Shown: positions 3,211-42,800 of the stretch, piece by piece | Layout: every line of letters begins with the position of its first letter | How positions within the stretch are numbered: position 1 is the first letter of the stretch | NCBI GenBank assembly: GCA_963924565.1 | Contig: OZ004608.1 | Span: 16,492,001-16,556,000, forward strand | Source: Ascidiella aspersa | Taxonomy: Eukaryota | Direction of reading: 5' to 3' | DNA: 64,000 bases | Made by a program: the position numbers and the translations under genes | The notes under the pieces: model-generated | Told to the model about the DNA's origin: nothing | Seen by the model: only the letters and a program-made list of their open reading frames with translations | The model's database searches: none

Positions 3211-3768
3211 CAAAGCGAACATTGCCAAGTATATATACATGACTGATTTTAACAAGGACTGTAGATATATTAATGTCTGTCATACATGTTGGTGCTTTAT
3301 TCTTATGCATTATGAAATAATTCATTTAAATAATAATACAATTTTTATAAAATGTTTTTAATGCGGTAATCTGGATTTTTAACATTTTGTTTGTTTTGCT
3401 ACAATGTGATTCATACTGATTTTTAATTTATCATGCTGCATTGAACTTGCTCTCTATCTCAAAATGGCAAAAGCTGTAGCAAACTAAAAAAAAAATGGTA
3501 CTATCTGTGGATTCCTGTATAATGTTTAATCTAAAGTTGTAGTTTGGTTTGGTGCTTTTGTAAAACTGAACTGTATTAAATTGCCATGTAGCTATTCGTT
3601 TATAACACTGTTTTCCAAGTTGCATGTTTTTAATCACCAATCTGTTTATATATACTTAGGCATTATCTGTATTATTTGTCTGGGTAATTGACTCTAAAAA
3701 TGTATACCTAATTGCAAGCAAAGTTGGTGGATATATTTTTGGCTTCGGTGTGTAACAAACATTTCACC

Positions 3769-33800: not shown

Positions 33801-36800
33801 ATCGGCTGTTTTTAGGCTTGGAACCCCGAGTTAAATTGTGCGACAACAGTTACTCGCTTTTTACAGCATTGCAGCATTACACGTATATAATATGCTTTTC
33901 GATGCAGATGCGACAAACGACTTACGTGCAGCTTTTGCGCGCCATAGTCGACCTCTACCACAGCCCGAACCTTATCCCACAGTACAAGCCCAGACTGGAG
34001 GAAACGATCAAGAAGATGGGTGAAGTCGGTGAGTGGTCGATGTTCCCCGGTGTTCGTTTTTTGCTTCTAGCGACCTCATTGTTGGTGCTTTTTTATTTGG
34101 TGGTTAAAATCACGCCCCCGATCCTTTTAATCCCATTTAGCGGTGAACTGTTTGACAGACAAGCATGCCGAGTTCATTTGTCACTAATCAATAACAAGCG
34201 GGGTCGGACTACCTAAAATTATTTAGTACCATGAAGAGCTAGTATTTACATTTCTGCCAAGCATACCTTACAAACCTAATTTTCTGATTTAAGCTGGTTG
34301 TAAACCGTAAAAACAAGTTAGAGGGAAAATATAAAAAATCACTTCATTGCTGTAACATTTGTGTATGTTACATTTGAAACACCGACCTTGCTAATAACGT
34401 TTTTTAAGTCGTCTAACACCGTATGTGTTTGTCATGCAAAATCAAATGCTAAATATAAAAATCTAATAAATGAAAACATACTACTTTTCATTTTGTTGTG
34501 TTGTAACCGAATCTGCATGAACCCCCGATCTATATAACACGTGGCAGCGAGCACGCCAAAGCGACACGCTCGCGCCTCCGACTGTTACGTCACGCCCACG
34601 GCACGAATCTAGCCAACGTCATCATCTTTGTGTTCATCCATGTGTTTGCAGCGAAGGCGTGCAACGTCGCGCTGCCGAAAGACATCGTAAACCTCATCCT
34701 GCTTCAGAATAGCGTTAAGATCCTCGGTACACGTTGATGGCTGTCGCCTTTGTTTGTATTTACAGTAACTGGCTCAATTGCATGCCTTGTCGTGTCCCTT
34801 GTTTGCTCCTCTGTTGGTAGGCAACTCCACCTCAAGTGATTTGCATTCTTTCATCGCATGGACGGACTGCTTGTGTAGTGGTTTGCATGGATTGAATCGC
34901 ATTTAACGCCTGCTTAATTCAGCCTGCTTACATGACAAATCTCTTGCACGTGGAAAAGGATAAAACATATTTTCTTTTCACGAAAATTTATTTTAAGTTC
35001 CAACGCAATAGATTGACATTACACTAAATAACAGCGGTTTCGTGCAATTATAATGCTGCCCTTGGAATTACAGGAGCCAACGAGGCAAATATATGGCAAC
35101 GTGCGCCGTGACGTCGTTAACAAAACTCGCGTTTCATCTAGCCACATCTCTTATTTTCATAGCACGTTACACATTCGATTTGCTCGCTATGTGTGGTGAC
35201 CATGGCCTTGTTTGTATGAACGAAAATGTGAATTTCGTCGCTATAACCAATCAGCAAGCTGACACAGTTTACCAACGTAACCTGACTGCAACCAAACCTA
35301 GGTTTTTGTCATATGAACGCACTATAATTGCCCACCTGTATAATAAAAATAAACTCGCTCTTCACCTGATTGCGGAACTATAAACACTCCATCAGCTCGC
35401 GCAAGTTCGCCTTGGTTTTCGCGTTCCAAGCATGGTGTTCTCCCTCTTCCACAGGATGTGTATAAAACCAGATTGCGTGTAATACTTTAAATATAATTCG
35501 ACTGTATTTTCCATTTACTGTCGTGCAATTCCATAACTTTATTTCGACATCTACCACTGTAGGAAATAAACGCCTACGATTAAAAAAAACGTGTAAAAAT
35601 TAATTACCTTGTTTTAACGATCGGAAAACCTGACCTCGTCTTCCACTAATTCCAAGCCACTGTCGTTTTAAAGCCAAAGAACGCCACATCACAATGCCCG
35701 GCAAGCTCGAGACTAGGGTTAACGAGGTGGTAAACAGGCCCAACGTGATGGGCGCCATTCAGCGCTTTCGCGAACTCCGTTCCGCTACTCTGACCAAGCG
35801 AGACTCGGAACAGACGACCGGCCAGGTAATTGGTGGCGCAACAAACCAACTTTGCTTCACCCTCGTTGAAAATGCCATCAGAGTGAATTATTATTGGGGA
35901 GGAAAAAGAAAATGAACAGAAATCCGTCGCCCGCTGTGTGGTAGGCAAGCACAATTCGTCATGCTAAATAATTCTCGTGCTGGTTTAAGGGCTAGACCTC
36001 GTTTGATCATCCATCAAGCAATACATAAACTCGTCAATGCCTCTTGTTTGATTTGTCACAAGGAGGCGCTATTAGGATTTTTTGCAAAAAAACAAACAAA
36101 AAAAAACGCCGTGTAGTTTATATTTGTAGATCGTCAGCAAGCAAACGCCAACACACGATTTGCGCTCTTCTGCTATAATGCGTTATAACTAGTCAACCTG
36201 CTTTTGCTTCGCACCTATGTTGTATTTCTGCACAGCTTTGTAGACGCAAGCCGATTGTTGTTCGGCCTTGTGCGAGTAGAGATAGCTGCATTCACCAGTC
36301 GTTGGAACTTCACCTCGGAGTGACGTTGTTGTCAGCTTTTTGTCTCATTTTGATATTACCCATGTAGATGTTATACATTGGCTCGTTGTTGCTTGAAATT
36401 TCAACTATTGTCCTTGAAGCAGATCTTGTCGGGTGATTACCACCTGTTAAAAGTTGCTTTTGGAACAATAATTATTAAAAAGAGTTCATGAAAACACTTG
36501 ACGAAAAAACACCTGTCGGTTATATTATAAACTATTTAATGTACGAATTTTGCAATAATGCTGGGTTGCTGTCAACAGTAAACAATTCCAAAAAAATTCG
36601 TAAATTTTAGACAATTTTTAATAATTCCAAATAAAAATTACTCTTTTTTATTTTTCAATATTTATATAATTCAAAAACCTTAGCCACACTCAGTTTAGTT
36701 TCTTTCCCATCAATATCGATTTTCATGCATTAATTGGCATATCGGAGATTATTCTTCCATCCATACTTTTTTACGATTTGATCGAAATGTTCCACTGTTT

Positions 36801-39800
36801 TAGTTGTGACAATAGGTTTTATAAATTGCGACGCCAATCAACTTTAATTTAGTGGTCGTCGCGATAATTGTTTTTGTTGGCTCGTTCTTGTTTTTTTTCA
36901 CCTTGATTTTAAATTGATATTCGGTTGTAATTAGCCGACTTGACTTGTGATAACGGTGCAGATTGTGGTTATGCTTTGCGTCCACTAACCGAACGCCCTA
37001 ACAACCTTAACGCAAGTATTTAATTTAGGCTTATGAATTGATTGATAATAATGCGCTGCATTGAGCATGTTTTTTATAACCAACCGATGTGATAAATTTG
37101 TCTCACTAAGTTTTTTTTTTTAATTGTCGTCATTAAAACGAACTTTTGGATTTCTAGACTTTTTAAAAGGCGCCGTTTCGAAATAGTTCACACGTTTATA
37201 TTTTTATAAATCAAAGCAGTTAGCGTTTAACAAAAAAGTAAAACAAAATTACATTAACAAATCTGAAAAATATTTTTTGTGCTTAAGTTTTGCACGCTTT
37301 ACCTCGAAACTATTAATTAATTCTAAATTTAGTGTTGTATTAACATTGTGTAAAAAAATTCCTTACCGACCGTAAATGTTAAAATGTCATAAACTAAGCG
37401 AAACTCAAGTTTATTTTTTTACGTGTGAATATTTTTTTAAACGCCGCCATTTGCAGCTAACCTTTAGTAAAGTGGCAAAATAAATGTGTTTTTATTAAGA
37501 TACAGATGTTCTTAAAATAGCTTTAATGTCCTTAATTCATTAGACCACTGTGAGATGAATTGTACTCAAACTCAAAACTATTTCATTAATTGTCATCCGC
37601 GGTGTCAACCTTTTTTCCCGAATGACACGACTTCTAAGCCGGCTAAGATTTGCGAAATGTTCCTTTAAAAATAGGCAGATTTTTGAGTCGCCCTGCTTTT
37701 TGTAGCCTCCCAAAAGGGCGTGGCCATCACGTCCGAACTGCAAGGGCAAATAGGCAAGTCAAAAATGAGCCAGGTGGAGAAGGCGATGCGGCGCTTCATG
37801 TCACGCCGACACATCTTCCGACCAGGAGCCGAGGCGCAAGACAGCCAGGTTTGAGTTTCTGCCAAAAAATATGTTCCCTGTATTGCGGTTGATTGTGGCT
37901 CAGTCGAGGAACAAAATCGCTGATCTATAAACGAGTTGGCTTTTCAGGGGCGAATCGTTTTGATATTCGCAAGCAGTTGTATTAAAACAAATATCGAATG
38001 GGTAGTTTTTGAATGCGCTGGTGCACAAGTTTACGACTGCGATGGTCTGGTTTAAAAAGTAATCTTGTCATTTGGATTAACCTTAACTTATATTGCAATC
38101 TTAGTGTTCGAAAAATAATCTTGCGGCTTCGGCCAGTCCAATGCTTTTAACAGCACTCGAATGTTTTTTAACAGTTACGGTCATGTGTATGCTGTGGTAG
38201 GCTATTGATTTGCTTTTGATTCTTTAAAGCGGGATCCTAGGAACATGAAATCTTCAAATTGTGCATAAGACATTTTAAAGCAATTGATGAACAATAACAT
38301 TCCAAAGAACTGTTATATTATCCTTTTTGTAATGTTGGGAAAATTCGCGTTTCGTCTGGTCGTGACCTAAGCTGCTTAAAAATATTTTTTATCTTGCAGA
38401 GTAATAAATATTTAGATTAGTCCACTTTTTCCTGTGCGTTTAGTTCTGTACTTTCATATAGCCCTTATGTTTATTCCCTGTCCAATCACTGAATTCGTTA
38501 GTTTTTCCAAGAATGACTGCATATTTGAAAAAATCACCTGTTGTTGCTGTGGGTATATCTTATTGTCATGGATAAAATTAAATGCCGGTTTGTCAGGAAT
38601 TGTGGTAGTTTCGAAATATATTCTTATGTTACATGTTTTAAGACGAATTGTGTTAGGGGATTTCTGGTAGCTTTGTTGCAAGATATGCGCAACTGCTTTG
38701 TTAAATGTCACATGGGAGAGAAATTGTATTCCTGTTTTGGCATTTTCACGAGACAATATGAAATTCGGCACGGGTAGATAACATTCTTAAAGTATAAATT
38801 GTCAACTTACCTAAATAACAAAGTATAACGTGTGGTCAAAAAATAATTTTATTTTGCCTTCGATTTTAGTGATATTATAAACGTTAATTGGCATATGTAT
38901 TTATTGTGTAATACGGAAATAGAATTAAAAACAATTAAACCTTCTTCTGTTTGCCTCTACGTCCTTAATGTGTGTAATATACGCATTTAAATTTATATCC
39001 TATGTTAAAGTTAAACCTTTTGTCATATGTTATCTTATAAATTATATGTTATCTTGAAATCATATGTTATCTTATAAAACCTGGGCGTGCAGAGCTACCG
39101 GGATGTGATAGAAGGTTTGCAGGACATCGTGGCTGTGCTGGAAAGCCAGTTACGGCCTCTGGTTCAGGCCGAGCTCTCGGTGCTGGTCGACATCCTTCAT
39201 CGACCCGAGCTGCTCTTTCCCGTCGACACCGACGCGAGGAAACAGTGTGAGGGCGGAGGATTCATTTCCAAGTAATTTCGCGTGTTTGTTATAGGCATAA
39301 AAATCAGATCGAAGCTACTGAGTATAGGTGTATGTGTGGCTAGTTAGGGATGAAACCAATTCACTCTTTCTGTGCGTTAACTTTAACAAAAGCAGTTGCT
39401 GAATTAAGGCCAACCTCTCCGTCACGCACGAAAACAAGTCGTTGGAAACCATTCTTTAAATATTTTGTCAAAAGTAACTGCTTTGTTTCAACTTATATAC
39501 AAGAACCTCCTAATAGAACAGAGAAACAACAGTGCCTAATGTTACGACAGTACGCAACTATATTGTAGTTTTATTGCTGCGGTTCACATTCAACTTGGTG
39601 ATTCAAAATGAAACACTATATCTGCAGATCGCAATTTGTGATCGTGTTGTTTTTTGTATTTTAGGTTAATCAAACACACAGAGCGTTTGCTGGAAGATCG
39701 CGAGGAAAAACTGTGTGTTAAAGTTTTGCAAACATTGCGCGAAATGATGACCGTCCATATCAACTTCACGAACAAGGTACATTCGAATGCATAAAACGGT

Positions 39801-42800
39801 ATTCAGCTTTCTTGAACAAGGCGAGAGATTATGACCTGGCATGCGATACGAAATGTGCCTAAAATAAAAAAATAAAAACTTTCTATATCGTTATATATAA
39901 ATTCAATGCTAGCTAAATAATTGATGATAATTTGCCTGTCATCCCAGTTGGCTGACTAAAATCTTTTGTCAACAAACGAGTTTCAAATTGTGCAATTGAA
40001 ACGTAATGCCTGCTTCCCTATGATCTTATTGATAATTGCTTTTAGACACTTTCAACACCTGTATAGATATATATTGAACCCATAGGCGCCGAATTTTCAA
40101 AATTCCAGGGCGTTTTTTTTAAATTAGTACAAAACGATAATCAGTAATCACCAACAAAACGTAACAATATTTGGGAAAGCGATTTATCGCTTTAGTATAT
40201 TGTCATTAAAAAAATGCGTTGTGTCTCTCGTAATTTCGTAGTAACAAAATGCAAATGCGCGCTCTAAAATGACAACGACAACATGAAGTGGAGATTTACT
40301 CTCGTTACAAATAAATGACCCATCTGTTAATGAACAATATAATACTTTCGCGATATACGATTAATATAATTATTCGCAATAATCAATTTTAACGGCGTTT
40401 TGGTTATACTTGCAGACAAAGTCAAAGAGGGGGCGTCTAAAAACGCTCTACACACCCACATTCGGCGCCTATGATTGCACCTGTTTAGATATATTATGCT
40501 CGACCAATTCTATTGACTAGCGAAAGCAAGTTACCGGGCGCCTGCCTACTGCTTTCACAAACAATGCCTCATCCCGCTATTTTTACGTTACATAATAATA
40601 ACTCTTGAAATGTCCCTAGATTTGCTTTCGCTGTGCCCGCCTGGTGTAACAGCGGCCGAGTTCGACGCTAACCAATGACTTATGCTATTTTGTTTTAGAG
40701 CAATAACGTGTACAATGACAGCATCTGGGAAGAGGTTAATAAAAACTTGCACTTACTCACTCTCCTTTCCTCTGTTTTGCTCTAATCTATTTATTTTCGT
40801 ATGTCTCTTATGTTGTCGTCCGGGGAACGTCATGATCTTAGCACTCTCTTTCTGCCCCTTGCTAGCGCGTACGCGGCTGTTCATTGTTGGTGTGTTATCT
40901 TTGCCCTCCTTGCTACGAAGCTGGTCTTAATACGGATGCGCGGGGACGTGGCTATAAACTGGCCTTTAAAATTATTTGATGCATTTTTTTAGTATTATAC
41001 GTTTTTGATAACTTAAGTCTTTATGTTTGGACATTTCCTGGATATTAGTAAAATTGGTAAACGTTAAGATTTGAACTATTAAACAGATTTAGCGATAACA
41101 TTTTCCCTTTTTAATGCAGTGGCATATTAAAATAAAAAAAAATGACTCTCTTAAGCAACTTTAGGCCAATTGTCCTCCATGTCACGTCCCTGCTTTATCC
41201 CGACGACGATTTGCCAAGTTCATGCATGCGACTGGACTGCTGAAATCGCGGTCCTAACTCATGGTGATGCCGTCAGCAACGGTTGTTCGATAATCGCAAT
41301 TGATTCCGTAGTTATGTATGGCTGGCTGGCCGATGCATGGATTACACATGATTGCTTCCAGCTGTGGCCCTTTTGACTGCTGCTATTGGTTTGGTGAAAT
41401 GTGACACCATTTAAACTTAAAGGCATGCTAGCGGTGATGCGCGAACCTAATAATACACTGTATGTAGTTACCAGATTTGAGACAAAATACTGGATTTTTT
41501 GTTGTCCTATGAGTTTGTGTTATTGAGTAGCACCGACCACATGCCTAGCGATTTTTTTAGTTACTTTTTAAATTAATAAGGTCATTTCTCATGAAGTCGA
41601 TGTTCGTTGATTGTTCACGATATTCTTTAGACCTATTGGTCTTTCCTGTGTTATCATGGAAAGTTTTGTTACGCTTCATTTCACAACTAACAGCAAGCTA
41701 GCATATATTCGTCATGTTATGTTTAGGAATGTCCATGTTAGGATTTAGTTGTCCGTTGTGCGCTTTAAAAACCTGGTTCGTTGAAATAGACAAAACTCGG
41801 TTATTTTTTTGCAAGACGATAGGCGCAACTTATGCATGTTACCCGAAAATAGACTTATGGCACAAGTTGACGTTTAAATGTAGCAACGGTGATCCACGTG
41901 AAAACATAGCGTTCTCTACATAAAGTTAAGTGTCGGTGCAACTTTCGTGTTTGCTTTTGTTTAACTTGCAACCTGTGGATTCCAGGAAGCTGAGACGCAA
42001 GTGCGTGGAACCAGCGTGGAAGACCGCAGACGGGTAGGTGTAGGTTTAACTTGCGTGGTAGCCAAAGAAAGTTCTATAACATTCTATTGCTTGCCAATGC
42101 ACTGATTTAAACTGTTTTCACTGTCATGTTTGTTCTAAATTTTAAATTTTGAAATGGTTGCATCTTTAAAAAAATAAATTTGTACAAGCTGGTAACTAAC
42201 ACACCATTAGATGCAAAAAACAAGCCAATGCTAAACCTAGCTGCCTAGAGCCCAGATTCTGTAAAAAGCGCCCGTATTACTTTAGGGCGAGGCTCTGCGT
42301 CAAATCTTACTCTCGAGGTACTACGGTGCTAACTATCAACACTTGAGAGATATGGCGCAACGCGAGAGTTCATCCTCTGCCACAACGAACAGCACAAGGT
42401 TTGTAACGTATGTATATTGATCAGAACCCAGGAACGCATCGTTGTGAGAGCAAGTCCTGTTTTTATAGTTCAGCAGAAAACATAATTTAAAACACACCTT
42501 TCTAGTTTTATAATCAATATTAAAATGTTCATGTAAGATAAATAGGACTTTCCGATATTTTTTCTTGTATAATGTTACCATTACCCGATATTTTGCTAAA
42601 AAGAACCACCCTCGGTTTATTGTTATCAAATGACATGATTACTATAGTCGAAAAGGCAAAACTGTTAAATTTGGAACATGAAAGGATTGTTTAAGTTAGT
42701 TGTTAGACCATATTTTACCGTTTGCTGGCAAACCGTAACTACAGGTTCTATCAATATGTCATGGTATTGTTACCTTTCGCTCTAGTATCGGACCAGTGTA

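Follow-up and report, generated by a model that had tools for sequence, protein, structure and literature searches.

Can a single gene for the inositol 1,4,5-trisphosphate receptor (IP3R) make receptors with different regulatory loops by choosing between tandem copies of one exon? This question is raised by a stretch of 64,000 nucleotides (nt) of the Ascidiella aspersa assembly GCA_963924565.1 (contig OZ004608.1, positions 16,492,001 to 16,556,000 of the forward strand), here called the window. Its + strand carries an IP3R gene from an N-terminus near 3760 to past 63000, the product of which is about 59% identical to a vertebrate ITPR1 over about 2500 residues. Between two constitutive exons of this gene lie three further segments, termed exons a, b and c. 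An initial annotation, made from the sequence alone, had read them as a mutually exclusive array that switches the region of the protein kinase A (PKA) site S1589 of ITPR1, and the exon coordinates and phases that it assigned were all borne out by splice sites and reading frame. The five exons concerned are the following:

33908-34028, + strand: upstream constitutive exon, 121 nt, ending in phase 1 (KKMGEV plus g), as set by splice sites and frame
34652-34726, + strand: exon a, 75 nt, 25 codons, phase 1 to 1, acceptor tttgcag, donor gtacac
35674-35825, + strand: exon b, 152 nt, 51 codons, phase 1 to 0, canonical-type copy with KRDS
37706-37848, + strand: exon c, 143 nt, 48 codons, phase 1 to 0, alternative copy with a basic 1-5-8-14 motif containing RFMS
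39093-39271, + strand: downstream constitutive exon, starting in phase 0, donor AA/GTAATT

We propose that the ancestral exon for the equivalent of ITPR1 ~1544-1595 was duplicated in tandem within a single IP3R gene, and that each transcript would take exactly one of b or c. Taking both or neither would lead to a premature stop and then presumably to nonsense-mediated decay, and the frame-neutral exon a (75 nt) could be added in front of either copy. Two to four receptor isoforms would result, distinguished only by a regulatory loop: the b form would be canonical-like, with a basophilic kinase site (KRDS in this species), and the c form would carry a strongly basic amphipathic 1-5-8-14 motif with RFMS instead of the canonical loop. 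In its full extent, this proposal states that homologous-exon substitution switches the central calmodulin/kinase loop (a strong 1-5-8-14 helix from c, a canonical kinase-site loop from b), that one gene would in this way reproduce the difference between vertebrate IP3R1/2 and IP3R3, and that a would bring the number of isoforms up to four; we give it roughly three chances in ten. The narrower claim, of a mutually exclusive pair in which both b and c are productive, appears to us somewhat better than an even bet, and two receptor versions with different regulation probably arise from the choice between them.

Origin and conservation of the three exon copies

The relationship of the copies was assessed against a reference profile, built from 18 other IP3Rs, which were collected with the downstream exon as query and of which the segment ahead of that exon was taken. 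The family pattern of this segment reads AK.R.IAIP.DL..QV..LF.K, followed by about ten residues, an aromatic residue and then basic residues. The profile-profile comparisons (hhalign) gave the following matches:

Exon b against the family profile: P=7e-9, over 36 columns
Exon a against the family profile: P=3e-5, residues 1-17 on residues 1-17, in register
Exon c against the family profile: P=2e-4, residues 1-19 on residues 1-19, in register
Exon c against exon b: P=0.004, around a common RF motif

Not one of 60 column shuffles attained any of these scores. We take a, b and c to be diverged copies of one ancestral exon, because each copy matches the family profile at a level that the column shuffles leave unmatched, and we regard a as a truncated copy of the 5' half of that exon, with the motif AK..V.LP.D[IV]. 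When a short motif hidden Markov model was run in six frames over this locus and that of a relative (contig L002, see below), b of the relative and c and b of the window were among the top four hits and a was missed; phmmer searches of the PDB with b alone or c alone gave no matches.

The relative is represented by the metagenome contigs L002 and L003, which were found by a contig scan in which the query was P0001, a genomic open frame that shares 90% identity with the downstream exon. L002 and L003 are 99.8% identical and are one organism sampled twice. L002 belongs to another species and is not a paralogue, because exons b and c and the downstream exon are each single-copy in the genome of the window. 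In the window, exons a, b and c are each flanked by AG and GT; in L002, all five exons are bounded in the same way, follow the order and phases of the window between the same two constitutive exons (upstream, a, b, c, downstream), and have open frames in a, b and c. The orthologous exons are:

L002 4771-4891: upstream exon, 121 nt, 72% amino acid identity
L002 5873-5947: exon a, 75 nt, same phases, 62.5% amino acid identity, tblastn E 2e-8
L002 6103-6245: exon b, 143 nt, 2 mod 3, 50-53% amino acid identity, tblastn E 2e-13
L002 7246-7379: exon c, 134 nt, 2 mod 3, tblastn E 1e-10, C-terminal 36 codons 53% identical
L002 from 8017 to 8194/6: downstream exon, 97% amino acid identity

Exon b differs in length between the two species by 9 nt, as does c, and both remain 2 mod 3 in each. 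At the nucleotide level the exons of the window and of L002/L003 are 55-78% identical, the introns show no alignment, and silent sites are saturated (silent-site divergence, pS, 0.56-0.94). The divergence at amino acid-changing sites (pN) of a, b and c is 0.23-0.35, which lies near that of the upstream constitutive exon (0.21) and far under pS; for c alone, pN is 0.35 and pS 0.72. Substitutions are in excess at third codon positions in b (p=9e-4), in c (p=0.05) and in the three exons taken together (p=1.4e-4).

These comparisons bear directly on the possibility that b is the only exon, with a and c no more than open frames arising by chance or pseudo-exons in decay. The pairwise similarity between the copies is not significant and c has no RNA reads, as such an explanation would have it. 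Against it, a and c are conserved (tblastn E 2e-8 and 1e-10) in a relative in which introns and silent sites are randomised, and their splice sites, phases and length classes are intact in L002/L003. Chance frames or decaying pseudo-exons would be lost at such divergence, which is why we regard a, b and c as real coding exons under purifying selection and this alternative as highly improbable. The initial annotation had pointed to related genomes as a check and held that copies unconserved or disrupted there would speak against it; L002 and L003 keep all three intact, with order, phases and length modulo three preserved.

The array does not extend throughout the family. In the organisms from which the open frames P0005 and P0003 derive, a b-type exon shares one genomic open frame with the downstream exon without an intron between them; therefore no c-type exon is possible there at the same position, and the three-exon array seems to be lineage-restricted. 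P0003 was also considered as an a-type insert in another species, but a short intron, read through in the translation of a genomic open frame, explains it better. Outside the array, a 59-nt block (window 40680-40738, L002 10335-10393) is 93% identical between the two species, compared with 75-78% in the neighbouring coding exons.

Splicing logic and transcript evidence

Frame bookkeeping gives the same result in both species: the reading frame stays open only when the upstream and downstream exons are joined through b, c, a plus b, or a plus c. If b and c are both included, a stop arises about 9-15 codons into c; if both are skipped, one arises within the downstream exon, so that the earlier claim that both or neither would break the frame holds in the window and in L002. 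Exons b and c share their phases and a similar length, which makes them interchangeable; as both run from phase 1 to 0 and are 2 mod 3, and as both or neither yields a stop, they behave as a frame-enforced pair and are very probably mutually exclusive, and wrong combinations of them would presumably be removed by nonsense-mediated decay. Exon a, with 75 nt and phase 1 to 1, is not interchangeable by these standards, and its proposed membership in the mutually exclusive array finds no basis in the frame. Its end at 34726 is set by the only usable donor; it could serve as an optional cassette of 25 codons, be included constitutively as an additional exon, or be used jointly with c.

The last of these options leads to an alternative in which the choice would lie between b alone and a joined to c, where a would give the N-terminal AK..LP.D helix and c the basic C-terminal half. 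The combination is in frame, and c of L002 has lost the AK.R.IAIP.DL-like motif at its N-terminus, which a keeps. On the other side, b sits between a and c, an odd geometry for a split unit; RNA coverage is found on the bin that holds a and none on c; and in the window, c still has an N-terminus that fits the motif. We consider such a split unit quite unlikely.

How exclusivity would be achieved is constrained by the architecture of the locus. The introns of the array are long and all splice sites are GT-AG, which excludes steric hindrance and U2/U12 incompatibility as mechanisms. The donors of a (gtacac in the window, gtcagc in L002) and c (gtttga and gtttgg) are weak in both species, compared with the consensus gtgagt of the upstream constitutive exon, a pattern that would fit regulated exons.

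An alternative would be that only b (with or without a) is productive and that c is a conserved "poison" exon, the inclusion of which after b would bring a stop and nonsense-mediated decay, and thereby a lower receptor output without any c protein. The stop within c upon joint inclusion in both species, the absence of RNA reads on c in one run and the conserved weak donor of c are all in line with this explanation. A poison exon, however, needs no open frame, yet c keeps one of 44-48 codons in a phase fit only for replacing b; its length stays 2 mod 3 through a 9-nt indel, it retains a conserved 14-residue motif with pN of 0.35 against pS of 0.72, and a match in register to the canonical IP3R segment is retained. 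For these reasons we think a poison exon unlikely, and prefer the exchange of b for c.

Transcript evidence comes from one RNA run of the species. About 6% of the run was read, which placed 55 reads on a 5.6-kb stretch, all in sense orientation, and joints were listed at three or more reads. Seven reads support the acceptor of the upstream exon, with loose ends (33905) that spell the preceding exon. Coverage is about 5 on the bins of the flanking constitutive exons, 2.8 on the bin holding a, from which reads continue into the following intron, and 1.7 on the bin holding b, ending at the donor of b and before the next bin.

Several observations weigh against the exchange of b for c. No exon-exon joint for a, b or c reached three reads among the 55, and the only joint listed is a 45-nt intronic indel. 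Coverage over c is zero; c is rare at best in the sampled run. The protein collections yielded no spliced or transcript-derived fragment with a, b or c; a search there with the open frame of c returned no candidates, and one with the downstream exon matched only genomic open frames starting in introns. The peptides at the start of the three segments, described initially as paralogous, are so in register through the family profile and not pairwise: direct similarity by local alignment is at chance level (shuffle p=0.17 for a-b, 0.56 for a-c and 0.07 for b-c), and the profile match between c and b is weak. The conservation derives from one independent relative only. With an AG that lies 11 nt inside c, an in-frame product of b joined to a shortened c is possible in principle. 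The docking/selector RNA pairing that had been suggested as a check was sought among short conserved intronic words and inverted repeats, where nothing convincing emerged, and the functional assignment taken up below draws on motifs only. With these points in view, we infer that b and c are both used in splicing in vivo, that the choice between them is strict, and that the swap affects calmodulin/kinase regulation.

The introns of the array hold further features. Three words are exact in both species, each near chance level when taken singly (E 0.015-0.9). TGCTTAATTCAG, of 12 nt, is the only word conserved colinearly in the a-b intron (window 34911-34922, L002 6022-6033). CATTCTTTCATCGCA lies after a in the window (34844-34858) and after c in L002 (7435-7449). 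TGTTATCTTATA occurs in the intron between c and the downstream exon of both (window 39028-39076, L002 7799-7810) and is repeated two to three times directly upstream of the downstream exon in the window. All three may be sites for splicing regulators. An Rfam search of the region gave no match.

Two intronic stretches are covered by RNA. Between b and c, a block of sense RNA at 36700-37540 reaches exon level (depth up to 4.8), has read-free stretches of about 750 nt and about 930 nt on its two sides, is single-copy in the genome and has no long open frame. Its coverage stops just past an AATAAA at 37479-37484, and the block may represent an alternative terminal exon that uses intronic polyadenylation and would truncate the receptor after b, or else a non-coding transcript of its own. 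The individual from which the RNA was taken has a 45-nt deletion allele within it, with 36769-36813 replaced by C. In the intron after the upstream exon, seven reads lie at 34170-34360 (+ strand), five of them starting at 34239; all seven show A>T at 34225 and G>A at 34226, and the stretch has no Rfam match. Because this stretch is single-copy in the genome, the reads do not come from a repeat; they are nascent or intronic RNA of another allele.

The regulatory loop encoded by the candidate alternative exons

The position of the variable segment in the receptor is given by its neighbour. The downstream exon aligns to IP3R1 1596/7-1654/5 in solved structures (PDB alignment, E 2e-24), and since it corresponds to IP3R1 from 1596/7 onwards, the variable exon corresponds to ITPR1 ~1544-1595, that is, to the last helix of the regulatory ARM2 region and the loop after it with the central calmodulin site and the PKA/PKG site S1589. 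Alignment to other IP3Rs and the solved structures thus uphold the original placement of the segment at the AKSRAIAIP...RRDS(1589) region of ITPR1. ITPR1 binds calmodulin at 1564-1585 (PMC7215520). The central calmodulin site is absent from IP3R3, and the regulation of IP3R activity by Ca2+ and by calmodulin is reported not to depend on it (PMC3685217). IP3R1 is enhanced by PKA through Ser1589 and Ser1755 (PMC8124356).

Exon b follows the canonical arrangement. Its KRDS is followed by seven residues and then YR, exactly as RRDS(1589) of ITPR1 is, so that the two sites stand in register as had been proposed; b has no conserved 1-5-8-14 motif. Exon c contains a 14-residue basic stretch with a net charge of +4 and 1-5-8-14 spacing, conserved in both species, which we take to be a classical 1-5-8-14 calmodulin-binding pattern. 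In alignment, this motif falls on the RF motif of b and on the tryptophan-bearing core of the calmodulin site of ITPR1, and inside it lies a conserved R-x-x-S site (RFMS), also present in both species. The statement that c lacks the KRDS site is therefore correct as to KRDS itself and does not make c simply site-less, in view of RFMS within the basic motif.

According to the initial annotation, the array would make cyclic AMP (cAMP)-sensitive and -insensitive receptors. In its specific form, this explanation holds that exon choice makes receptors that are sensitive (b) or insensitive (c) to PKA and cAMP, and it draws on the exact register of KRDS with RRDS(1589) and on the action of PKA on IP3R1 at Ser1589 (PMC8124356). 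Exon b of L002, on the other hand, has RRDA at the position of KRDS, so that the phospho-acceptor is not conserved; the segments of the other invertebrate IP3Rs compared lack RRDS, and c has a conserved R-x-x-S site of its own. The serine is not a conserved property of exon b. A cAMP switch is possible in this species, although weakened by RRDA in the relative and RFMS in c, and we would rate it as improbable; calmodulin or other kinases would be no less likely targets of a switch than cAMP. As far as the motifs go, the most defensible functional reading would be that exon choice swaps a calmodulin/kinase regulatory loop.

Gene number, known systems and significance

The idea that exon choice stands in place of the vertebrate paralogues implies a single IP3R gene. 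Searches of the 308.6-Mb assembly for the RIH_assoc and Ins145_P3_rec domains, the counts of which are lower bounds, found the window locus and one other. The latter lies on contig 6 at ~6081000-6154000 (+ strand), spread over at least 70 kb, and is presumed to be a single ryanodine-receptor (RyR) gene. One IP3R locus, with its single-copy downstream exon, agrees with that idea and is consistent with a single IP3R gene in the genome. In the same assembly, mitochondrial COX1 is found more than 23 kb into contig 75 (23317-24654, - strand), with TGA, read as Trp, at two in-frame codons; its best database matches reach 72-77% identity, a sign of a poorly sampled lineage.

Substitution of tandemly duplicated exons is well known in large channels, including the RyR of insects and nematodes (PMC4204029, PMC9741552). 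With the known mutually exclusive pairs, such as 19a/19b of insect and nematode RyR and unc-68, Nav 5a/5b, Cav and PMCA, the present array shares adjacent homologous exons of similar length and same phase, an exclusivity enforced by the frame, conservation across species and the swapping of a short regulatory segment of a large channel. It differs from them in that the gene is an IP3R, that the copies are far more diverged from each other, that a third, truncated and frame-neutral copy is present and that the array is known from genomic sequence. The literature searched contained no mutually exclusive exons in IP3Rs, in keeping with the earlier statement that no such array had been described; human catalogues of mutually exclusive exons list no ITPR genes, and an insect review gives only cassette sites for IP3R.

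In vertebrates, the segment ITPR1 1544-1595 occupies the same position in the protein and has the same 5' exon boundary (phase 1 before AK; P0038), and b aligns with it over 36 columns with KRDS in register with RRDS. In contrast to the array, vertebrates have one exon here, which is 10 codons longer at its 3' end, and diversify through three paralogues, of which IP3R3 is without the central calmodulin site (PMC3685217); moreover, the relative of this species does not share the RRDS serine. The SI, SII and SIII sites of ITPR1 and the cassettes of insect and nematode IP3Rs resemble the array as cases of alternative splicing that tunes the regulatory domain, and exon a is formally like an in-frame cassette of this type. 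SI, SII and SIII, however, are include/skip cassettes elsewhere in the protein (318-332, ~917 and 1692-1731), and in Tribolium, the IP3R contains a single optional exon, of 8 residues, at 922-929; in neither case does one homologous exon replace another.

IP3 receptors are central to calcium signalling. If true, a conserved alternative exon pair confined to the central calmodulin/S1589 loop would be an evolutionary pointer that this loop matters, and it would offer two natural loop variants ready for comparison in IP3R-null cells. The IP3R would then join RyR, Nav, Cav and PMCA as large channels with independently evolved exon-substitution splicing, and gene duplication and exon duplication would be seen to solve the same regulatory problem.

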